Positions 3,674 to 63,185 of a stretch of DNA of 64,000 bases are shown piece after piece. The notes under the pieces are model-generated. The model was not told the origin of the DNA and made no database searches. It was given only the letters and a program-made list of their open reading frames with translations. Where the stretch lies: positions 62,001 through 126,000 of IMG/VR virus record IMGVR_UViG_3300043409_000928; one strand, 5' to 3'. The first letter of the stretch is position 1, and each line of letters opens with the position of its first letter. The translations under genes and the position numbers were made by a program.

Positions 3674-4539
3674 TTTAAGTTTAAGTAGTCACTGGTACTA
3701 TTGTTATCAACCCACAGGTGCTGTGTATCTTTGTATTTTGCAATACTTCTATCTAACAGATCGACATATTGATTTACCTGGTGATTAGTAATTAATTTAC
3801 CTCTCCAAATAAACAATACTTTCATCCCTTTGGCACTCATGAGACTTCTGTGTTTGGTTCTTAAGTTATTCCAAGCAAATGAATTTGTTTCAGCAAGTTG
3901 TGGTATAGCAATGTACTTGTTTGTGTGTTGCTTAATTGGATCTGTTAACAAGTAAAGAGTTTCGCTGGCATTGTTGTCAAATAATTTAACTCGCATTGAC
4001 AATGGTGCATCAATTAGACTAGTACGGTCGCGATGTGGTATTATATCAGCGGCACTGGACCACATGTTCCATGCAAAATCTTTATCACCTACCCAAGGCA
4101 TGTAGTCGTGTATTTGCTCAAAAATTTCAGGGAATTCGGTGTAGGTTTTCTCCAATGCATTTAAAGACCAAATTGGATTCCATCCTGGCGTTACGCTGTC
4201 TATGCTCCTATAAGTTCGATCTGTTTCCGCAACTGTGGCGCTGGCAAAATCAGCCTGAGCCTTGCTTGCATGTTGTGCATTGTTATTAAAATAAAGAATA
4301 AATTTTTCAATGTCATTGATTTTAATACTAGGAATATTGTATGGAACAAACAAGTACTTGCCATATGTTTGTTCAAGCTTGGAGTGAAGGCCAATGACTT
4401 CGGGTAGTAAGCTCAACTCGTGTTTACGAAGCTTGGTTAAATTTTCCTTGGTCTCGGTTACAGCGCCACCTACTTTACGTTCTACGTTTTGTTCGGTGTA
4501 CACTGTTTGATTATCATTGCTCCTGATCATACTTGTCAA
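3670..4539 (-). CDS. Hypothetical protein, possible cupin/2OG-Fe(II) oxygenase fold
   Basis: 289 aa, ATGA overlap with the mini-DnaE stop. HxD (IIPHRD) and a distal His (WNNLRTKHRS). Confidence 0.5.
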   Translation of the reverse strand: MTSMIRSNDNQTVYTEQNVERKVGGAVTETKENLTKLRKHELSLLPEVIGLHSKLEQTYGKYLFVPYNIPSIKINDIEKFILYFNNNAQHASKAQADFASATVAETDRTYRSIDSVTPGWNPIWSLNALEKTYTEFPEIFEQIHDYMPWVGDKDFAWNMWSSAADIIPHRDRTSLIDAPLSMRVKLFDNNASETLYLLTDPIKQHTNKYIAIPQLAETNSFAWNNLRTKHRSLMSAKGMKVLFIWRGKLITNHQVNQYVDLLDRSIAKYKDTQHLWVDNNSTSDYLNLN

Positions 4540-54946: not shown

Positions 54947-57892
54947 TTAACTTAGTCTTACCGGAGCATCGCTGGTGGATGGTCTTGTATTACCTCTAAT
55001 TGCGGCCATATCGTTTTGTATTGAACTAACCATTGACATTAATTGGCCAACTGTTTCTTGGGTAAATGTAGGACTATCTTTTGGTCCAGTTTGTACGTCC
55101 TGATTTGCAACAATATTGCCTGCTACATTACTGTCTACACTTGGGGTATTAATACTTGCATACTGTCTCTCAGTAATGGTTCCTGCAATTTGTCCATTTG
55201 TAGAATTTGGATTTGATATTGTAGCAGTTGGTGTTGGCTGTGTAACAATTGAAGCTGTCTGTGTGGCATTTGAAGCTGTCTGAGTGGCAGTTGGGGGTGG
55301 CTGTGTAGCATTCGAAGCTGTTTGTGTAGCAGTTGATGATGCCACAGGGTTTAAATCTTCGTTACCACTTGGCTCAGAATTGTCTGCAACAGCGTTATCT
55401 TTACTAAGACCCATGGCCTTGCCTATCCATGAATCACTTAGCCAACCAAACAAACTAGTAAATGGTTTTGTGATTACTTTCCATATTGCACTGGCACCTG
55501 ATTTTAATATGCTGGTTAAACCGTCAAATGCACCAGTAAAAAGTCCAGTCACTGAATTCCAAATTGCACTGGCACCTGATTTTAATATGCTGGTTAAACC
55601 GCTAAATGCACTACTGAAAACTCCAGTTACTGCATTCCATATCGCACTTGCACCATTGGCAAACCATCCTACTAGATCTTTAAATCCGTCCCATAACTTA
55701 CCAGAAATTTCAACAATTTCATCCCAGAAATAAATGATACCAGCACCCACTGCAACCACTGCCGCAATAATTCCCCATACTGGTGCTGTTATACCAGCCA
55801 GGAGACCACCAATTGCTGTGGCAATACCACCTAGGATTGATCCAAGGCCAGCCATCATACCGCCTAGCATAGGCACTAATTTAGCAATCCAAGGTCCTAA
55901 TTTCCCAAACCAACCAGCAACAGGTCCTATGAATTTTCCAAGCTTGCCAAAACTGCCCACTACCGATCCCCATGCAGATGTTGCCATTGCAATCAGGGCT
56001 GGTATAACAGTTGATAATATTGTCCAGGCCATAACAGCAAGATTTTTTATCATTGCTCCTGCACTAGAAAGTAAGGCCATACTAAATTTGCCCATGGATA
56101 ACAGCATTCCAGTAAACCCACCAGCACTTCGGTATGCTGCCATTGTTCCTGCTAATAGGCTTCCAACAAATTTACCCATTGAAGCGGCCATTCCAACTAG
56201 CCCACCTGCATTTTTCCACATGGCCACAGAGCCTGCTAATATGCTTTTACCAAAGTCCAGTAGTGCTGGTATAATCATTTTAACAGAACCAGCACCACCT
56301 GACATAAATGCACCTACACCACCGGCCGCCAACACAGCCGGTAATATTCCAACTAGGCCTATAATGCCAGCAGTCAATCCAACAAGAACATTACGCAAAC
56401 TTCTCATTGTGTCTGCTAGGTTATCCATTGATTGAATGTTCTTGGCTTCAGAAGTTTTAAACATACCTTCTAATTCTTTTTTTGCACTTGCATCACCTGC
56501 CGCTGCCTTGGCCTGCAGGTCTAACTTTTTAGCCAATACACCAGCCGCAATACCTGCATCAAATAAACCTTCAGTGCCTTTTGCTCCAAGATTTGATCTA
56601 CTGTTTGAAATTGCTTCAAGATTGCCTCGCTGTCCTTGCATGCCTTTTGCCAAGCTTGCCGCATCTACTACACCACCATTTGCTTGCTTGGCACTGGTAA
56701 CTGCTCCTGTTACTGCTTGAAAGTTTGCCATTGCTTCAGGACTGGCATAAGTTGCTGCCGCACCATTATCGCCTTTGGCAATTAACAATGCCATTCTGTT
56801 TAAATCTTCTTCGTTATTGCTTACACCTGCCGCGGCCAGTGCTTGTTTAATATCTTCTGCGCCTTTAACTCCTTGGAGTGCGGCCGCTTGTCCACTTGTA
56901 CTCTTTCTAAAGTTTTCAATACTCTTTAGAATTTCTTTTGAGCTGGTACCAAATGCGTTGCTTAATGTTCTGGCACTGTCAACAGTTTCAGCATACTGCT
57001 TGACCATCATCTGTTGTGCTTCTTTTTCACTTTTAGCAGTCAACTGAATAGTTGCACTCAGTGAACCCATAACATTTGCTTGATCTTCTTGTGTCAATCC
57101 CATTGCCGCAGTAGACTTTGCGGCTTTGTTCATTGTCTTTGTTAATTCAGGTCCAAGATTTTTACTAAGCGTTCCGCTGATAACACCACTTCCCATTCTA
57201 AAACCTCTGGCCAGTTCGCTGAGTGTTTCAACTGATTGTTGTGAGTTTTTACCAAATGCTTTAAATCCGCCTTGACTCTGTTCAATAACTTTAATAAAAT
57301 TATCACCAAGGCCACTCATTAGTTTTGCTTGTGTAATGGAACCAATTTTAAATGCTCCAAGATCAGCCATGCCACCAAGTTGTCTAGCGTCACTGGCAAA
57401 CTCATTCATCATAGTAAGCATAAAACTTACACCACCAGCAAATCCGCCTAAGGCTTTTCCTACCACAGAAGTACTGTATTTTAAATTAGAACTTAGTCCT
57501 TTAAATGCTCCTTCAAAAGTTTGGCCACCTCTAAATAGGTCAGTGCCAAAGTTTTTAAATTCTTTGCCTACATCTTTCATTGAAAGTGCCACTTTGGCAT
57601 GTGCGTCTTCTTCTTTCTTTATTGTCTTGATTAATTCTTCGCGCTCGTCATTGTCCTTTTGAGATAATGATCCTGTTTTTTCCAGAACTTTGCTTAAACT
57701 TGCTAATCTAGATTCTAACTCCAAAAATTCCTTTGACTTTGGCGCTGACTTTGATGATGTCTTTGCTCCGGCTACTCCAGAAGTGGATCCTGTGCCTCGA
57801 CCTACGCCATCAGACATGCCGTTCATTTTTAATGTCAAACGCTCAAGGGCATCTGCCAAATTCCGGCCTGTTTCTTCGGTCAATTCACTCAT
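54947..57892 (-). CDS. Tape measure protein
   Basis: 981 aa, helical A/G/K-rich, long hydrophobic segment, Trp/Phe-periodic repeats. Confidence 0.75.
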   Translation of the reverse strand: MSELTEETGRNLADALERLTLKMNGMSDGVGRGTGSTSGVAGAKTSSKSAPKSKEFLELESRLASLSKVLEKTGSLSQKDNDEREELIKTIKKEEDAHAKVALSMKDVGKEFKNFGTDLFRGGQTFEGAFKGLSSNLKYSTSVVGKALGGFAGGVSFMLTMMNEFASDARQLGGMADLGAFKIGSITQAKLMSGLGDNFIKVIEQSQGGFKAFGKNSQQSVETLSELARGFRMGSGVISGTLSKNLGPELTKTMNKAAKSTAAMGLTQEDQANVMGSLSATIQLTAKSEKEAQQMMVKQYAETVDSARTLSNAFGTSSKEILKSIENFRKSTSGQAAALQGVKGAEDIKQALAAAGVSNNEEDLNRMALLIAKGDNGAAATYASPEAMANFQAVTGAVTSAKQANGGVVDAASLAKGMQGQRGNLEAISNSRSNLGAKGTEGLFDAGIAAGVLAKKLDLQAKAAAGDASAKKELEGMFKTSEAKNIQSMDNLADTMRSLRNVLVGLTAGIIGLVGILPAVLAAGGVGAFMSGGAGSVKMIIPALLDFGKSILAGSVAMWKNAGGLVGMAASMGKFVGSLLAGTMAAYRSAGGFTGMLLSMGKFSMALLSSAGAMIKNLAVMAWTILSTVIPALIAMATSAWGSVVGSFGKLGKFIGPVAGWFGKLGPWIAKLVPMLGGMMAGLGSILGGIATAIGGLLAGITAPVWGIIAAVVAVGAGIIYFWDEIVEISGKLWDGFKDLVGWFANGASAIWNAVTGVFSSAFSGLTSILKSGASAIWNSVTGLFTGAFDGLTSILKSGASAIWKVITKPFTSLFGWLSDSWIGKAMGLSKDNAVADNSEPSGNEDLNPVASSTATQTASNATQPPPTATQTASNATQTASIVTQPTPTATISNPNSTNGQIAGTITERQYASINTPSVDSNVAGNIVANQDVQTGPKDSPTFTQETVGQLMSMVSSIQNDMAAIRGNTRPSTSDAPVRLS
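55485..55601 (-). repeat. 78-bp-period repeat (39 identical bp) in the tape measure gene
   Basis: Identical blocks at 55485-55523 and 55563-55601. Confidence 0.85.
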
Positions 57893-57926
57893 TAAATTAC
57901 GGTCCTGAAGCCATTATATTAGTACA

Positions 57927-57963
57927 TAAATAGATTATGAAAGTAGGCCTACGAACCTATTTA
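57927..57963. promoter_or_regulatory. Face-to-face late promoters for gp26-like (+, 57927-57932) and tape measure (-, 57958-57963)
   Basis: TAAATA present on both strands. Confidence 0.6.
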
Positions 57964-57981: not shown

Positions 57982-58875
57982 ATGGATAACCAAAACCCAC
58001 TAAAAAAGCCGTTTAAGGCAGTGACACCAAACCCGTTGGCAGGGTATTACCGCCGCCCTGGCACATACATTGAACTTCCTTCAAAAGGAAGATTTTATAA
58101 GCTTCCACCCAAGGTTTCAGACACAAACGAATTGGCAATCTATCCAATGACTGCCAAAGATGAATTGGCATTAAAAAATCCAGATTCGTTATTAAACGGT
58201 GAAGCGTTAAAGCAGGTAATACAAAGTGTTTGTCCAGATATCAGGAATGTCAACGAAATTCCTGCCCCGGACATTGATGCTATCTTAGTGGCCATGCGTA
58301 TGGCCAGCTATGGTGATGACATGGAATTGAATGTCACACACGGATGCAATGAAAGCGAAGGGAAGAGCCAACGAATTACCATTGGACTAGGCGGAGTTCT
58401 TTCTACTCTTAAAGAAATTCCAGAAGGTGTAGGCTCAGTTACACTTAGTACCGGTGTACGAGTTGAATTAAGACCGTATACGTTAGAATCACAAAGTAAG
58501 CTTCTTCGCATTCAATTTACAACAATGCGACAGTTGCAGGCCATGGAAGCAAACGAAACTTCAACAGTTGATCAAAAAGCAGAAGTTGCTACCAATGGAT
58601 ACAATGTGTTGGTTGATCTAAGTCAAGAAATACTTGCACAAAGTATCATTTCAGTAACATTACCAGATGAAACTGAAGTAACTAACTATTCACATATTTT
58701 TGAATGGGTTAAGAATTTAGATCGTGCAAGCAATGAACGATTAGATGTAGAGCTAAAAAGATTTGGCGAGTTTGGTATTACTCGAACAGTTAAAATAAAG
58801 TGTGATTACTGCAATGAGGATTACACATCAGATATGTTGTTTGACCCCACAAGTTTTTTCGCCAACGGCTCTTGA
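57982..58875 (+). CDS. Baseplate hub assembly chaperone, gp26-like
   Basis: YIELPSKG, YPMTAKDE, PDIDAILVAMR, CDYC, ends SFF. Start at 57982 with SD AAGGA. Confidence 0.75.
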   Translation: MDNQNPLKKPFKAVTPNPLAGYYRRPGTYIELPSKGRFYKLPPKVSDTNELAIYPMTAKDELALKNPDSLLNGEALKQVIQSVCPDIRNVNEIPAPDIDAILVAMRMASYGDDMELNVTHGCNESEGKSQRITIGLGGVLSTLKEIPEGVGSVTLSTGVRVELRPYTLESQSKLLRIQFTTMRQLQAMEANETSTVDQKAEVATNGYNVLVDLSQEILAQSIISVTLPDETEVTNYSHIFEWVKNLDRASNERLDVELKRFGEFGITRTVKIKCDYCNEDYTSDMLFDPTSFFANGS

Positions 58876-59099
58876 TGTTTGGAGTTGATAGAGTAAAGAT
58901 TAGAAACTTTATTGACGCAATCGAATCAGATGCAAGAGCCTTAATCAAAGAAGTATCTACACTAAGCATCTGGGGACCAGTGGATCCAGAATCAATCTGG
59001 AATATGACATATCTTGAAAGACTTGTTCTTAGTGAAGCAATAAAAGAGAAGACAGAAACAATGTATGGGAAAAAAGGTATTGCTCGTAGTCGGATGTAA
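58872..59099 (+). CDS. gp51-like hub assembly protein, possibly the -1 frameshift extension of gp26-like
   Basis: IWNMTYLERLVL resembles the gp51 LENMxPWER pattern. No SD. Confidence 0.6.
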   Translation: MMFGVDRVKIRNFIDAIESDARALIKEVSTLSIWGPVDPESIWNMTYLERLVLSEAIKEKTETMYGKKGIARSRM

Positions 59100-59229
59100 C
59101 TTGTTATATCTTGGTAGAGCGAATACTTCGCTCTTGAATTTCGTATCGCTTCGCTCTACTCATTCATCTTGTATTATATAGAGTAGTTAAAGTAATTATA
59201 GTGGATTATAGTGAATCACATTTGATAAC

Positions 59230-59640
59230 ATTTTGATTACTTGACACTGATGCTTCAGTCACACTTAGCCCTGTTAAGGACTAAGAGAAAACTTGACACC
59301 GAAGTTCAAGCCACATTCAACTAAAGAAACTTGTTAAAGTAAGGGCGGTCACGCTGTACCCTTTTACACTCATCTTATATGACGCTACCGTATTGACCTA
59401 GTTGAAATCGTCGATACAGCATGTAGGTTGTAATAGTTCACCAGAGCCTACTCATTTTAGCTTTCGTATACTAATCCCAGTTCTTTTCAAGCAATTGAAC
59501 TTCGTCCTGTGAAGGATAGTGGGCGTTAGTCTCTGCTACTGCACAGAATTTCCTTCCCCAGCGCAACCCTAGTGCCTGGTTTTATGGGTGTCTAATTATA
59601 TCGGTGACACTGACCTATCAGTAGTGATCTTGTCGTTGTG
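59230..59640 (-). ncRNA. Candidate large structured RNA, boundaries approximate
   Basis: No ORF of 60 aa or more across 660 bp, and at least 7 predicted helices including a cUUCGg tetraloop on the minus strand. Confidence 0.5.
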
Positions 59641-59757
59641 AGTTTGCTAATTGAATTTGCGAAATCGCTGTGAGTGTCTACATTGCGTAGTAAATTAGCC
59701 AGGATGAGTTATTGTACACTTTAATTATCAAATGAGCCAGGTGAGTTATAGCCGTTG

Positions 59758-60186
59758 TTACAGCTTGTTTATTATGTGTGAGCCATGTACACGAACACTA
59801 ATTTGTCCATTGTAATAATCTGTCGATTCCAATACTTTTCTATCAAATTGTTCTTTGGCCTCTATGTAAGAGCATACTGCCTTTGAATTACAGTAATGTA
59901 GAATCTCTCTAATAAAGTTATCTCTACCAAGAGATTCTACATCTTTGTTCAACTGATCGTTGCTACCGTAGTATTCTTTCCAGTCTGAGTCAATCTTAGA
60001 ACGAATACGCTTTTTCTTCTTGACTCCATTTTTCTGTTTGACCACTTTATAGGTAGTCTTGGAAAATTTTGCTAACTTTTTGCCAATATACATCCGATGG
60101 TCAGTTTTATTTGTTATAAGATAAACAAAACCAACGCATTCTTCAGGAAGTACATCTACCACAGTACCTTGATACAGCCAAGTCAT
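59758..60186 (-). CDS. Stand-alone GIY-YIG endonuclease domain, 142 aa
   Basis: GFVY-x9-YIG, EAKE, YYNG. Basic insert KVVKQKNGVKKKKRIR. Confidence 0.85.
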   Translation of the reverse strand: MTWLYQGTVVDVLPEECVGFVYLITNKTDHRMYIGKKLAKFSKTTYKVVKQKNGVKKKKRIRSKIDSDWKEYYGSNDQLNKDVESLGRDNFIREILHYCNSKAVCSYIEAKEQFDRKVLESTDYYNGQISVRVHGSHIINKL

Positions 60187-60377
60187 TACTTGGGAGTTGA
60201 CAGGGCTTCTTTCTCGGCTGTAATCTCTTTACGGCGTTCTTTGATTGCTTTGCTCATTTCTTGCAGAGCCTTACGAGCTCGAGCGGCCGCGGCCTTTACA
60301 CCCTTGCCTGAGAACTTTTCGTTTTCAGCTTTATAATTTTCAAATTGTTCTAAAAGTGTTTCATGATTTGTTGACAT
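60186..60377 (-). CDS. Histone H1-like (Hc1-type) small basic protein
   Basis: KGVKAAAARARKAL motif. Start at 60377 with SD AAGGAG. Confidence 0.6.
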   Translation of the reverse strand: MSTNHETLLEQFENYKAENEKFSGKGVKAAAARARKALQEMSKAIKERRKEITAEKEALSTPK

Positions 60378-60387
60378 TACAGTCTCC

Positions 60388-62166
60388 TTAGTTAATTTCA
60401 TTCACTTGTGTATCTGTGTCAAGCATGGTAAATCCACTTTCTTTGACTACCAAAAGTACATTGTTGACTCGACTTGCTAACTCGTCTCTATGCGAGATTA
60501 AGAAAATATTTCGATTCATTTCTCTACCCATGGATTTTAAGATTGACATTGAACATTCAATACCAACCTGATCCATACCTGAATCCACCAACTCATCAAT
60601 AAACAACAAGTTCATTGGTTCAGTAAAGCTCTCATACACATCTCTAAAACTCCAGCTTAGTGCTAGAATTAATCGATTCCGTTCGCCCCTACTCAAGTTA
60701 TCAAAATCAAAGCTTTGACCCAGTTGGTTGATATCAACTTCTAAATCGCTTCTAAAAGAAACTTGATGCGGCAATTGTAACTTATCCAAGTAATAACCCA
60801 ATCTGTGATTCAAATACGCTAAATTCTGTTCAATAATGCGTTTTCGGACAAATGAGTCTTTGCTTGTAAGTAACTTGAGCAAGAATTCTTGATGTTCAAG
60901 CAGTTTACTTACCCTGTTAATTTCATCCCAGCTAACCTCTGCAAGCGCAGTATTTTTAAGAGCTTCAATTTGTTCCTGATAAGGATCTTCTTCTTGGTCT
61001 TTTGCTTCTAGTTGTTTTCGAATGTTTTCTAGATTATTTTTATGTGCCGCGGCATCCTCTACATTTTGATATTTGGTCTGAGGTCTTGCCGGCAATTGAT
61101 TAATAGTACGCACTACCATGTCAGCCTGCGCCAAATAGCCATGTTCTTCTTTTAATGCAGTATCAGTTACTTTAACAGTATTGGTTGCAGATGCAACCAT
61201 TTCATCGTGCTTCTCGTCATGTACATCTTGCCCACAACTGGGACATTGATGTTCTTCGATTAAAGACAAGCTTCGTTGTGCTGACACAAGTGCATCTTGC
61301 AATTTCTTAACATTGCTTTGTCTTGTTGCCAATTCTTTATTGGCTAACTTTAGGCGATTTTCGTTTTCCTTATAAACAGCAAGGGCTCGATGAGAATCAA
61401 GTTCCAAATCAATATCAGTGTTTTCTAATTCAGTGATAGCAGATACATAGGCAGTAAGATCATCTGTTTTCTTTTTGACCCACGTTCGCGAACGGCGTTG
61501 CAAATCTTCTACAGTTGTTTGTACTCTGACATTGCTTTCTTGTAAAGCTTTGATTCGTGCTTCCTCATCGCGCACTTGCTCTTTACTATTTTTAATTTGT
61601 TCTCGTAGTAACTCAGCCTTTTCACTCAACTGAGTAATGCCAAGCAGTTCTTCGATGATGTCTCTTTGATCGTTTGATTTCAAACTTAAAAACGGTTGTG
61701 TATATGTGTTTAGTGCAACCAGATGTTTGAACATCTCGCTACTCATGCCAATAATGCGACCAATTGCTTCTTGTGTGACTCTATTCTCACCAGCACCTTC
61801 ATCTGTACCAGCTTCGTTGACTTCATGATCGTCAACAATAAAACGTAACAGGTTAGGCTTGCGACCACGCTCAATCCTATACTTGTTGCCGTTCTTTTCA
61901 AATTCAACTGTGACCAACATGTTATTAATGTTGGTCTTATTGATCAAGTTTTCTTTGCGAATGTTGGTAAGAGCTGATCCAAAGATAGCATAGCTGAGTG
62001 CGTTAACAATGGTGGTCTTACCTACACCGTTTCTAGCACCGTCGCCGCCTAAGTCTAAGTTATGCCCTAACACAAGAGTCAATCCATACTGATCCAGTAG
62101 AAGGGCCTGGGTAACATTACCCACGCTCATGAAGTTTTTGATTGTTATATTTTTAAACTTGATCAA
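60388..62166 (-). CDS. gp46: Recombination endonuclease ATPase subunit, gp46/SbcC-like
   Basis: NGVGKT, Zn hook CPSC, LSRGE, LFIDE, ISH. Confidence 0.93.
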   Translation of the reverse strand: MIKFKNITIKNFMSVGNVTQALLLDQYGLTLVLGHNLDLGGDGARNGVGKTTIVNALSYAIFGSALTNIRKENLINKTNINNMLVTVEFEKNGNKYRIERGRKPNLLRFIVDDHEVNEAGTDEGAGENRVTQEAIGRIIGMSSEMFKHLVALNTYTQPFLSLKSNDQRDIIEELLGITQLSEKAELLREQIKNSKEQVRDEEARIKALQESNVRVQTTVEDLQRRSRTWVKKKTDDLTAYVSAITELENTDIDLELDSHRALAVYKENENRLKLANKELATRQSNVKKLQDALVSAQRSLSLIEEHQCPSCGQDVHDEKHDEMVASATNTVKVTDTALKEEHGYLAQADMVVRTINQLPARPQTKYQNVEDAAAHKNNLENIRKQLEAKDQEEDPYQEQIEALKNTALAEVSWDEINRVSKLLEHQEFLLKLLTSKDSFVRKRIIEQNLAYLNHRLGYYLDKLQLPHQVSFRSDLEVDINQLGQSFDFDNLSRGERNRLILALSWSFRDVYESFTEPMNLLFIDELVDSGMDQVGIECSMSILKSMGREMNRNIFLISHRDELASRVNNVLLVVKESGFTMLDTDTQVNEIN

Positions 62167-63185
62167 TGTGTAAGTCCTTGATAGATATGTGCCAGTATTT
62201 GCTTATCAATTTGAGCAGAGTCAATTGCTTGTATCTGATTTAATACAATAGCATCAACTGATTCAAACTGTAGTTCGCCACCCTTCCATTCAGTTGAGTG
62301 TTCTTCTTTCTTGGTTGGCATTAGACTAAGCTCTCGCATTCCATATTCGTTGACCCATTTTTCTTTAATATAGGTTGCTTCTTCAAACGAAATATCAACA
62401 TCAATTGTAACACGGGCAAAAGTATGTTCATCAAACAAACTCTCATGTTTATCAATTGCATCTGTTAGTGTTAGTGTTCTAAATTTTGGGGCACTGGGCC
62501 AGTTTTGGAATTCTGGTTGACCACCATATTCTAAAAACATGCAACCACGCTCGTCATCCCACGCATCGGCGTAGTTGTGCGGGAAACAATTTCCCATGTA
62601 TACAACATTACCTCGCTTTTGTCGTTTATGAAAGTGTCCAGAAAATACAAGCTCTTGGTTGGGAAAGTGTCCTTCGTTCAATCCGCCATGGTCTGGCATT
62701 TCTACCATGGCATTCATTTTAAAATGTGGAAGTTCAAAGTGTCCAAATACATAACGACTCTTTAACTTTTTCATGTTCTCCCATTCACTGCCAACAAGCC
62801 AAGGAACAATTGTCATATCACCGATGGTTGTAATCTCATCAATCAAGTTAACATTGCTCAAGTGTCTAGCAAACGGGAGTGAGTTGATTTCACGCTTCTC
62901 TCTATATGCCAAATCATGGTTACCCATAATAATGTATACCTGCTCAAAGTTTTCTGAAAGGTACTTGACATTTGAAGTAGTGTAGTTGAGTGTGCTCACA
63001 TTCACAGTGGATCTGTTGTTGTGCCAATCGCCAAGGAAGATGCAAGTTTCAGCACCTGCTCGTTTGGCTTCTTGGGTCATCCATTTTATAAAGTTCTCAC
63101 AATCATCATTGTGAGCTCTACTGTTGTTTCTTAAGCCAAAATGAATATCTGTAAAGCACACAGCTTTTTTAAAAGGTTGAGTCAT
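62163..63185 (-). CDS. gp47: Recombination endonuclease nuclease subunit, gp47/SbcD-like
   Basis: DIH, GDW, GNHD, GHFE, SGHFH. Confidence 0.93.
   Translation of the reverse strand: MTQPFKKAVCFTDIHFGLRNNSRAHNDDCENFIKWMTQEAKRAGAETCIFLGDWHNNRSTVNVSTLNYTTSNVKYLSENFEQVYIIMGNHDLAYREKREINSLPFARHLSNVNLIDEITTIGDMTIVPWLVGSEWENMKKLKSRYVFGHFELPHFKMNAMVEMPDHGGLNEGHFPNQELVFSGHFHKRQKRGNVVYMGNCFPHNYADAWDDERGCMFLEYGGQPEFQNWPSAPKFRTLTLTDAIDKHESLFDEHTFARVTIDVDISFEEATYIKEKWVNEYGMRELSLMPTKKEEHSTEWKGGELQFESVDAIVLNQIQAIDSAQIDKQILAHIYQGLTH

Follow-up and report, generated by a model that had tools for sequence, protein, structure and literature searches.

A probable programmed -1 frameshift, conserved among homologues, in a baseplate-hub assembly gene of a jumbo phage

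Genes and sequence features at the locus

We analysed a stretch of 64,000 nucleotides (hereafter, the window) from the 285-kb genome of a jumbo phage, IMGVR_UViG_3300043409_000928, positions 62,001 to 126,000 of that record. The gene of interest (57982-58875, plus strand) has 297 codons followed by a TGA stop and encodes a baseplate-hub assembly protein of the T4 gp26/gp51 family: the protein matches Pfam PF12322 (T4_baseplate) with E 3.6e-13 and 50.2 bits, against a gathering cut-off of 24.5, over profile positions 11-219 of 219, and matches phrog_150 (baseplate hub) with E 3.8e-18. Its AlphaFold model has a pLDDT of 84.9. The start is almost certainly ATG 57982 (MDNQNPL...), which is conserved in all homologues, and not ATG 57937; contigs from RNA libraries begin at 57954-57960. 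The nearest relatives are Atu_ph07, PA5oct and Rak2/PBECO4-type phages, at 27-35% identity; the description of this phage as T4-like in the preceding sequence-only reading does not hold in the strict sense. A DNA-level search of the phage collection with the locus found nothing.

The gene ends with the codons ACA AGT TTT TTC, followed by GCC AAC GGC TCT and the TGA stop at 58873-58875. This places a slippery heptamer, U_UUU_UUC, at 58854-58860 in the X_XXY_YYZ register, four codons before the stop, such that the Phe292 codon would sit in the P site and the Phe293 codon in the A site. After a -1 slip, the next codons are CGC CAA CGG CTC TTG ATG, and this frame is open to the TAA at 59097-59099; the extension (58860-59099, plus strand) comprises 79 codons plus TAA. 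The short product is thus 297 aa and the trans-frame product 293 + 79 = 372 aa. The TGA lies at the 3' edge of the 5' arm of a predicted stem and overlaps ATG 58875 (TGATG), and no purine-rich Shine-Dalgarno motif is present in the 15 nt before this ATG. The sequence-only reading had described this junction, and what it described is correct.

Upstream, a divergently transcribed 981-aa ORF (54947-57892, minus strand) hits tape-measure PHROGs at 1e-14, and this tape-measure-like (gp29-like) gene is followed by portal, prohead protease and major head genes, identified by PHROG hits. The same hub/tape-measure-like/portal order is found in PA5oct, Phosso and PBECO4. Just after the extension lies a GC-rich hairpin region (59113-59160; -15.4 kcal/mol, z = -2.19), which may mark the end of the two-ORF transcript. 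This is uncertain: the depth of RNA-library contigs falls after about 59070, but a simple terminator scan did not call the hairpin.

Conservation of the heptamer, the -1 frame and the RNA structure

The sequence-only reading had proposed that a programmed -1 frameshift would be contradicted by homologues with synonymous non-slippery codons, or with stops in the -1 frame before the ATG. We examined this directly and found that no single-gene homologue uses non-slippery codons or has a stop in the -1 frame at the junction. All 173 homologous loci with a scorable junction, forming 19 clusters at 50% identity, keep NNT-TTT-TTY; they include 88 jumbo-type loci (64 unique junctions, 26-100% protein identity), 79 of 79 scorable cyanophage-type loci, and S-WAM1, S-RIM2, Vibrio D479, phiN3, OLIVR5 and LPCS28, and thus jumbo phages, cyanophages, and KVP40-like, rhizobial and Nanhuvirus phages. 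The residue before the two Phe varies (S, H, D, T, A, N; codons AGT, CAT, GAT, ACT, GCT, TCT or AAT), but its third base is always T. Third-position identity at the heptamer is 1.0, compared to a background of 0.63. Elsewhere in these genes TTT:TTC is 769:292, and T-ending codons make up 28-72%; from these numbers we estimated chance retention across 19 lineages at about 4e-9, or 4e-6 with the most generous figures. In homologues the zero-frame stop lies 1-11 codons after the heptamer. A coincidental pattern, in which Phe-Phe is simply a conserved C-terminal motif and the downstream ORF is an unrelated small gene or non-coding, is very unlikely. The dipeptide is indeed conserved in T4 gp26 (EFFELL*), where nothing is fused, but synonymous choices are fixed in 19 independent clusters, the -1 ORF is conserved and predicted to fold, and the only non-slippery versions occur where a separate long-form gene exists, in T4 and in the second gene of the metagenomic contig L191 described below.

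The -1 ORF is 57-81 codons long in all loci but one; the exception, a locus designated L074, has an in-frame TAG after 11 codons. The extension is conserved as a protein in 40 diverse homologues, from the first -1 codon onward, which is Arg in most members, and is predicted to form a small helical domain (AlphaFold pLDDT 88.1) with a conserved M-x-x-x-ER motif. A search with it returned 146 cluster representatives at E<=1e-3, nearly all called as short ORFs, whereas a tblastn search with the 74-aa ORF alone found nothing, and Pfam, PHROGs and NCBIfam scans of the window extension gave no match. The two pieces of the product were analysed apart. Foldseek against the PDB gave no match with E<=0.001 for either piece, and BFVD returned only uncharacterised small ORFs plus weak, non-significant hits, including a gp51 (E 3.9) and an entry named "tape measure chaperone" (E 2.5).

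An alternative, considered already in the sequence-only reading, is two separate genes with translational coupling: ribosomes would terminate at TGA 58873-58875 and re-initiate at ATG 58875, or at TTG 58872, giving a free 74-75-aa protein and no fusion. In its favor, the TGATG overlap is present in the window, TTG at -1 codon 5 is present throughout the window's clade, ATG at codon 6 is present in 14 unique junctions, and public records annotate the downstream part as a separate small gene, "baseplate hub assembly catalyst". It should be noted that some independent initiation cannot be excluded for this phage. However, re-initiation at TGATG cannot be the conserved mechanism, because most homologues have no ATG near the junction, and PA5oct has no ATG, GTG or TTG anywhere in its -1 ORF. 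In other lineages the first ATG/GTG/TTG lies at codon 13-33, and in many the first ATG is at codon 13-49. Residues encoded before any start codon are nevertheless conserved (R3 invariant, L4 near-invariant), and the TTG lies inside the conserved stem arm. This model explains neither the invariant heptamer with its constrained wobble base nor the in-frame fusion of the same module in T4 gp51 and in a metagenomic contig described below, and we consider it unlikely.

A six-nucleotide spacer (58861-58866) separates the heptamer from a predicted stimulatory stem-loop (58867-58940). The outer 8-bp stem pairs 58867-58874 (GGCUCUUG) with 58933-58940 (CAAGAGCC), and an inner hairpin pairs about 58886-58891 with 58909-58914; the MFE is -23.9 kcal/mol (z = -3.66). 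The predicted stem starts at position 7 after the heptamer (position 6 in one) in 10 of 10 diverse jumbo-type sequences. On 63 sequences, 89.9% of cells are paired and 7 of 9 pairs change on both sides, whereas slid controls give 26-54%. RNAalifold predicted no consensus structure on the full, very diverse 63-sequence alignment, and the stem appeared only when it was specified and its pairs were counted, or when the alignment was restricted to one clade; the consensus on 36 clade members shows 4 compensated inner pairs. Downstream structure is weak or absent in some cyanophage-type sequences, with z near 0, no Rfam family matches, and no chemical probing exists. Synonymous sites in both arms are frozen.

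A second alternative is transcriptional slippage, in which RNA polymerase adds one U in the U6-U8 run and the edited mRNA encodes exactly the same 372-aa fusion. The site is a homopolymer run of 6 T, or 8 T in one clade of homologues (L058-L066). Contigs from three metatranscriptome libraries span the junction with an unchanged U6 run, although these are assembled contigs and cannot exclude or quantify a minority of U7 transcripts. Six U is short for efficient slippage by bacterial-type polymerases. Moreover, the last base of the heptamer is C in 158 of the 173 scored loci, although TTT is the preferred Phe codon, which limits the run length and fits an X_XXY_YYZ site better, and a stem at a fixed 5-6-nt spacing with covariation is the classic ribosomal stimulator. 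Transcriptional slippage is thus also unlikely, although marginally less so than re-initiation.

One gene, two inferred products

The comparative evidence for a programmed -1 frameshift is strong, and the interpretation proposed in the sequence-only reading, i.e., a frameshift joining a gp26-like ORF to a gp51-like ORF, is supported, with qualifications. The upstream ORF is as much gp51-like as gp26-like; both T4 proteins are full PF12322 domains. The downstream ORF corresponds only to the C-terminal ~48 residues of T4 gp51, and for the window's own subtype this homology is modest. In the explanation that we favor with high confidence, most ribosomes terminate at TGA 58873 and make the 297-aa short form, whereas a fraction slips back one base on U_UUU_UUC, when the two tRNA-Phe re-pair on UUU UUU, probably promoted by the stem-loop, and reads on in the -1 frame to 59099, making the 372-aa long form with a 79-residue helical C-terminal domain. 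In this view the short form corresponds to T4 gp26 and the long form to T4 gp51, and the T4 lineage duplicated the gene, dropped the extension from one copy and fused it in frame in the other. The present analysis establishes the sequence features, their conservation and the homologies; that the slippage is ribosomal, how efficient it is, and that the two forms act together as non-virion assembly factors for the hub built around the neighboring tape-measure protein, in the way lambda G and GT do, are inferences. No trans-frame protein, junction peptide or reporter measurement exists for any member, and all the evidence is comparative. We found no published report of this frameshift in the literature searched, which is not proof of novelty. 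Programmed frameshifts in tail assembly genes are a hallmark of long-tailed phages.

The comparison with T4 supports this view. T4 gp26 is the bare domain (PF12322 residues 1-206, E 8.8e-64, 215.6 bits), ends EFFELL* and uses non-slippery TTC TTT, whereas T4 gp51 is PF12322 residues 1-201 (E 3.9e-52, 177.5 bits) plus an in-frame tail that hits phrog_634 (baseplate hub assembly catalyst) and aligns with the -1 extensions starting exactly after its VF. In the window, the extension likewise starts right after the Phe-Phe at profile position 218-219, i.e., directly after the end of the PF12322 domain. T4 gp26 and gp51 are paralogues (E 2e-6) and group together in the tree (support 92/94), inside a clade that also holds the frameshift-type hubs of LPCS28 and Vibrio D479; it should be noted that this tree rests on very divergent sequences, long branches and a midpoint root. 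HHalign of the hub alignment against single T4 sequences was uninformative, and the argument is carried by the Pfam matches. Thus, T4 genes 26 and 51 look like a duplicated, "resolved" frameshift, and a frameshift looks like a hidden, widespread feature of T4-related phages. The metagenomic contig L191 shows the same solution independently: it has two tandem paralogues, one short, with a closed -1 frame, and the other carrying the extension fused in frame through a non-slippery AGT TTC AGA.

Whether the window extension itself belongs to the gp51 C-terminal module was left undecided by our searches. It has no direct phrog_634 hit and matches the gp51 tail only at profile level: profile-profile comparison (HHalign) with the T4 gp51 C-terminal/phrog_634 group gave E 6.8e-5 at 63% probability, and E 2.8e-4 at 41% with a broader profile, over the M-x-x-x-ER motif. 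Direct BLASTP of the extension against T4 gp51 was not significant, and neither was that against T4 gp25, which was considered because T4 gene 25 overlaps the gene 26 stop in the -1 frame; it is a different protein. By contrast, the cyanophage, OLIVR5 and LPCS28 extensions hit phrog_634 clearly (cyanophage subtype, E 2e-30).

A broader reading, which the evidence does not rule out but which we regard as tentative, is that the PF12322 frameshift is ancestral to the whole T4 superfamily, including Rak2/PA5oct/Atu_ph07-type jumbo phages, cyanomyoviruses, and KVP40-like, rhizobial and Nanhuvirus phages, that T4 genes 26 and 51 are its resolved copy, with the same resolution arising at least twice, and that the short/long pair is the functional counterpart of lambda G/GT, acting on the tape-measure/hub complex. 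This would remove the T4-type phages as the standing exception to the conserved tail-chaperone frameshift, and would give gp26 and gp51 a mechanistic role. T4-type phages have been treated as lacking such a frameshift (Xu, Hendrix and Duda 2004). If the frameshift is real, it shows that most of the T4 superfamily does use a chaperone-type frameshift, in a different protein family; it explains why T4 has two paralogous hub "chaperones", as the two products of an ancestral recoded gene, and predicts that the ratio of short to long form matters for hub assembly; and it corrects the annotation of hundreds of phage genomes.

Comparison with known systems

Compared to T4 gp26 and gp51, the body of the protein belongs to the same family and the gene sits in the same place, divergent from the operon that holds the tape-measure gene, as T4 gene 26 is relative to the 51-27-28-29 operon. 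The short product ends a few residues after a conserved Phe-Phe, as gp26 does, and the long product would carry a C-terminal helical module at the same point as gp51. However, T4 uses two paralogous genes with no slippery site, whereas here one gene appears to give both forms, and the window protein is longer (297 against 208 aa) and only distantly similar. Leiman et al. 2010 (PMC3004832) list gp26 and gp51 as hub assembly chaperones and report that gp51 is absent from the particle.

The cyanophage, KVP40-like and rhizobiophage pairs of a "gp26 baseplate hub" and a short "gp51 baseplate hub assembly catalyst" ORF have an identical architecture, i.e., a PF12322 gene, NNT TTT TTC, a stop 1-2 codons later, and a -1 ORF of 57-68 codons. 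Their extension, found in 579 phage records, is a recognisable phrog_634/gp51 C-terminal module, while that of the window belongs to a more divergent subtype. In the records inspected they are annotated as two separate genes, with the second cut at its first ATG and no joined CDS; public annotations of the extensions are truncated 30-53-aa ORFs or are missing, and in the PA5oct-type records inspected (PA5oct, PAC2, MIJ3) the extension has no annotation at all.

The sequence-only reading had also likened the pair to lambda G/GT, and this holds as an analogy of expression logic and genomic neighborhood, not as homology. In lambda G/GT, P2 E/E+E' and other tail assembly chaperone frameshifts (Xu, Hendrix and Duda 2004, Mol Cell 16:11), a -1 frameshift a few codons before the stop of a tail-morphogenesis gene next to the tape-measure gene gives a short form and a C-terminally extended form with a shared N-terminus, an arrangement inferred here from sequence. 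P2 also uses a poly-U heptamer, and the T4 counterparts are assembly factors rather than clear virion parts. Conversely, we found no sequence or fold similarity to chaperone families, since Pfam gives only PF12322 and no PDB fold matches, the gene is adjacent to the tape-measure-like gene but divergent from it and not directly upstream of it on the same strand, and the extension is small (about 60-80 aa). The T4 proteins act in hub assembly; binding to tape-measure or tube protein and absence from virions were not assayed for the window proteins, the only hints being the report on T4 gp51 and the lack of a mass-spectrometry note on the PA5oct hub gene, while its neighbors carry one.

Bacterial dnaX (tau/gamma) likewise gives two proteins that share an N-terminus, through a -1 frameshift at a heptamer with a downstream stem-loop, and in other lineages the same pair arises by other means. 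The protein and function are unrelated, and in dnaX the frameshift makes the shorter product, whereas here it would make the longer one.

The probable frameshift site and its conservation

The sequence-only reading of the site is correct as an observation: a plus-strand ORF ends AGT TTT TTC GCC AAC GGC TCT TGA, with the stop codon at 58873-58875, and T_TTT_TTC at 58854-58860 lies in the X_XXY_YYZ register. After a -1 slip, the frame reads CGC CAA CGG CTC TTG ATG and stays open for 79 codons, to the TAA at 59097-59099. The upstream protein is a member of Pfam PF12322 'T4_baseplate' (50.2 bits, E 3.6e-13) and of phrog_150 'baseplate hub'. Its divergent 981-aa neighbor is tape-measure-like and is followed by portal, prohead protease and major head genes. 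The ORF as called starts at the first ATG, at 57937, whereas every homologue starts at the equivalent of ATG 57982 (MDNQNPL), so that the short product is 297 aa and the trans-frame product 293 + 79 = 372 aa. An alignment of 41 homologues shows that Cys122, Cys274 and Cys277 are invariant, in H-x-C and C-x-x-C contexts, and T4 gp26 and gp51 also carry C-P-x-C motifs, suggesting a small zinc-binding site in the family. HHalign placed the N-terminal motif of T4 gp51 (L-P-D-G-x-x-x-F-K-P-F-T) on residues 152-177 of the window protein (58390-58480), and a similar motif occurs near its N-terminus (residues ~27-60; 58060-58160); thus, the longer jumbo-type proteins may contain an internal duplication.

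The window, which is identical to a 285-kb IMG/VR contig, has no DNA-level match among 50,697 phage records. At the protein level, the hub gene is closest to those of jumbo phages, namely, Atu_ph07, Phosso and PA5oct at 32-35% identity, and XacN1, SCTP-2 and the PBECO4/Rak2 group at 26-29%. In all 94 matching records, the gene occurs at a single place. The phage had initially been described as T4-like; it is a distant T4 relative, and not a T4-like phage in the narrow sense.

Conservation of the slippery run and of an open -1 frame across homologues had been put forward in advance as the comparison that could overturn the proposal, and the heptamer proved to be conserved far beyond what the protein needs. 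In Atu_ph07, Phosso and PA5oct, the same T_TTT_TTC lies 1-3 codons before the hub stop, and a scan of IMG/VR gave 80 further loci. All 88 scorable jumbo-type loci, representing 64 unique junctions that span 26-100% protein identity, carry NNT TTT TTY (78 have TTTTTTC and 10 have TTTTTTT), and the zero-frame stop lies 1-11 codons downstream. The residue before the Phe pair varies (Ser, His, Asp, Thr, Ala), yet its codon always ends in T. The same holds in 79 of 79 scorable cyanophage-type loci, and in S-WAM1, S-RIM2, the KVP40-like Vibrio phage D479, Sinorhizobium phiN3, Agrobacterium OLIVR5 and the Straboviridae member LPCS28. Together, these form 19 clusters at 50% identity, or 14 at 40%. Elsewhere in the same genes, TTT:TTC is 769:292, and T-ending codons make up 28-72%, depending on the amino acid; from these numbers, we estimate chance retention in 19 lineages at roughly 4e-9, or 4e-6 with the most generous figures. 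The A-site codon is TTC in 158 of the 173 scored loci, although TTC is the minority Phe codon elsewhere. It should be noted that in Escherichia phage CMSTMSU (L086:3585-3866 in our set of loci; MH494197), the T run has five T instead of six and the hub gene is split into two ORFs; this record is flagged UNVERIFIED_ORG, and these differences are probably homopolymer sequencing errors rather than biology.

The -1 frame extension and a predicted downstream RNA structure

The -1 ORF is a real protein segment that lacks its own start. It is 57-81 codons long in every locus except L074 (IMGVR_UViG_3300010885_020795; 3849-3955), where an in-frame TAG interrupts it after 11 codons, at a site where relatives have a Glu codon; conserved coding continues after this TAG, which could be a sequencing error, a mark of a pseudogene or a recoded stop. 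Forty diverse jumbo-type extensions align with conserved positions from the third -1 codon onward, and the AlphaFold model is a compact helical domain with mean pLDDT 88. A profile search of 1.84 billion representative proteins found 146 clusters, nearly all of which are 30-98-aa ORFs that begin at different profile positions, as expected if gene callers start at whatever ATG happens to be present. PA5oct has no ATG, GTG or TTG anywhere in its -1 ORF, and in several other lineages, the first possible start is at codon 13-33. Public annotation reflects this: in PA5oct-type phages (PA5oct, L002:4867-5085, and PAC2, L100:2066-2197), the extension has no start codon and is unannotated, as it also is in MIJ3, and in PAC2, a 43-aa ORF on the opposite strand is annotated over its first part instead. 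Only a 40-aa tail is annotated in Atu_ph07, whereas in cyanophages, Vibrio phage D479 and phiN3, the extension appears as 30-53-aa 'baseplate hub assembly catalyst' ORFs. None of the inspected records has a joined CDS. Termination followed by re-initiation at the overlapping TGATG, the alternative that was raised at the outset, is possible in this one phage; however, it cannot explain the conserved features, and we consider it unlikely.

A predicted downstream RNA structure sits at the right distance from the heptamer. In the window, GGCUCUUG (58867-58874) pairs with CAAGAGCC (58933-58940) and encloses an inner hairpin, with an MFE of -23.9 kcal/mol and z = -3.66. In 10 of 10 diverse jumbo-type sequences, the predicted stem starts 5-6 nt after the heptamer, even where the sequence itself differs (PA5oct, XacN1, SCTP-2). 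On a 63-sequence alignment, the named 9-pair stem is 89.9% paired, and seven pairs change on both sides, in 33 cells, whereas versions slid by 1-3 columns are only 26-54% paired. One covarying pair couples a synonymous Leu change (CUC to CUU) in the 5' arm with an Arg-to-Lys change (AGA to AAA) in the 3' arm. Within the window's clade, RNAalifold recovers the invariant outer stem and an inner 6-bp hairpin with four compensated pairs. In the cyanophage group, the structure is strong in some members and absent in others, so it is not universal, and no Rfam family matches. Third-codon-position identity is 1.0 at the heptamer and in both stem arms, against a background of 0.63.

The locus is present in freshwater and lake metagenomes, and in several lake metatranscriptome libraries. 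Contigs from three RNA libraries cross the heptamer, stop and ATG without any indel in the U run, and all of them break between 57932 and 57954-57960, in the divergent intergenic region, where the DNA contig is continuous. This fits a transcript that starts shortly before ATG 57982 and carries both ORFs. Being assembled, these contigs cannot exclude a minority of U7 transcripts, so that transcriptional slippage, which would give the same protein, cannot be excluded either; however, it fits the C-terminated heptamer and the fixed stem spacing less well, and is likewise an improbable explanation. The contigs that begin at 57954-57960, and another that ends at 57932, suggest divergent transcript starts (region 57900-57960) in the 90-bp gap between the hub and tape-measure genes, and a T4-late-promoter-like ATAAATA lies at 57926-57932. 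On the other side of the locus, 59100-59757 is a 650-bp stretch without ORFs or tRNA genes that holds a GC-rich hairpin region at 59113-59160 with two alternative 3' partners, and two copies of ACTTGACAC at about 59239 and 59291, which may be -35-like promoter elements. Beyond it, on the minus strand (59758-60401), a SegE-type GIY-YIG homing-endonuclease gene (PF19835, E 7e-32) and a 71-aa Hc1 histone-H1-like gene (PF07432, E 2e-13) lie between the hub locus and the gp46/gp47-like recombination nuclease genes (60388-63185).

Relationship to T4 gp26 and gp51

T4 gp26 (208 aa) is a complete PF12322 domain (residues 1-206, E 8.8e-64) that ends EFFELL, with the non-slippery codons TTC TTT. T4 gp51 (249 aa) is also a complete PF12322 domain (residues 1-201, E 3.9e-52), followed by a tail, and residues 147-246 of gp51, which include that tail, hit phrog_634 'baseplate hub assembly catalyst' (E 1.2e-23). 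The -1 extensions of S-WAM1, OLIVR5 and LPCS28 hit the same PHROG (E 2e-30, 5.5e-8 and 3.5e-10, respectively), and in a joint alignment, the T4 gp51 tail lines up with them so that the extension begins exactly after the DVF of gp51. T4 gp51 is therefore the in-frame equivalent of the frameshift product, and gp26 the equivalent of the unshifted product. The two T4 proteins are paralogues (BLASTP E 2e-6), and in a maximum-likelihood tree, the T4-type gp26 and gp51 sequences group together (support 92/94) inside a well-supported clade (95/92) that also holds the frameshift-type genes of LPCS28 and Vibrio D479. Although the branches are long and the root is arbitrary, this fits a duplication that replaced the frameshift. 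T4-type Aeromonas and Acinetobacter phages have no heptamer at the end of gene 26, as in T4, and the Acinetobacter phage and a second Aeromonas phage also show the divergent gp26/gp51 gene pair. In T4 (L088:2803) and T4-type Aeromonas and Acinetobacter phages (L105 and L106), gene 25 starts in the -1 frame and overlaps the gene 26 stop (TAATG or ATGA); this is the same frame relation as that of the extension ORF elsewhere, although gp25 is unrelated to the extension (BLASTP E 1.8).

An independent natural experiment is provided by L191, a Logan contig from SRR29078296, which encodes the only long protein among the profile hits with a clean C-terminal match (P0127, 351 aa) and carries two tandem PF12322 paralogues (411-2389). 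Gene 1 (294 aa) is a short form that keeps a relic AAT TTT TTC, but its -1 frame closes at once, whereas gene 2 is a long form that carries the jumbo-type extension fused in frame through a non-slippery AGT TTC AGA; the two genes are 23% identical (E 2e-11). A jumbo-type lineage has thus independently reached the same two-gene solution as T4, which argues that both a short and a long form are needed.

The evidence that the extension of the window itself is gp51-like is weaker than that for cyanophages. There is no direct phrog_634 hit, and profile-profile comparison with the gp51-tail group gives E 6.8e-5 at 63% probability, or E 2.8e-4 at 41% with a broader profile, in both cases over the same [YW]-x-x-x-x-x-M-x-x-x-ER stretch. 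A BFVD fold hit to an Acinetobacter phage gp51 is not significant (E 3.9). The identical position, length, helical nature and expression signal make homology likely, but it is not proven.

Mechanism, function and comparison with known systems

The interpretation offered in the sequence-only reading, a programmed -1 frameshift that joins a gp26-like to a gp51-like ORF, is supported. Taking as established the sequence features at the junction, their conservation and the relationship of the hub protein to the T4 proteins, we infer with high confidence a simultaneous -1 slippage of the two tRNA-Phe on U_UUU_UUC, probably promoted by the stem-loop. The function of the two forms is likewise inferred: by homology with T4, they are hub-assembly factors. 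Leiman et al. 2010 (PMC3004832) list gp26 and gp51 as 'hub assembly chaperones', state that gp51 is not in the particle, and say that the presence of gp26 is disputed. The PA5oct record marks its portal and tape-measure-like neighbors as found by mass spectrometry, but not the hub gene.

Full-text literature searches found no paper that describes a frameshift in gp26, gp51 or 'baseplate hub' genes of these phages, although these searches largely excluded subscription journals, so that prior description cannot be ruled out, and no inspected GenBank or RefSeq record annotates such a frameshift. Chaperone-type frameshifts as such are already known; what differs here is the protein family, and the lineages, which were thought to lack such a frameshift. 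The similarity to lambda G/GT, with which the pair had been equated, is an analogy; we found no sequence or fold similarity to chaperone families, and the gene is divergent from the tape-measure gene rather than directly upstream of it. The parallel covers three points, that is, a morphogenetic factor next to the tape-measure gene, a -1 shift just before the stop, and a shared N-terminus.
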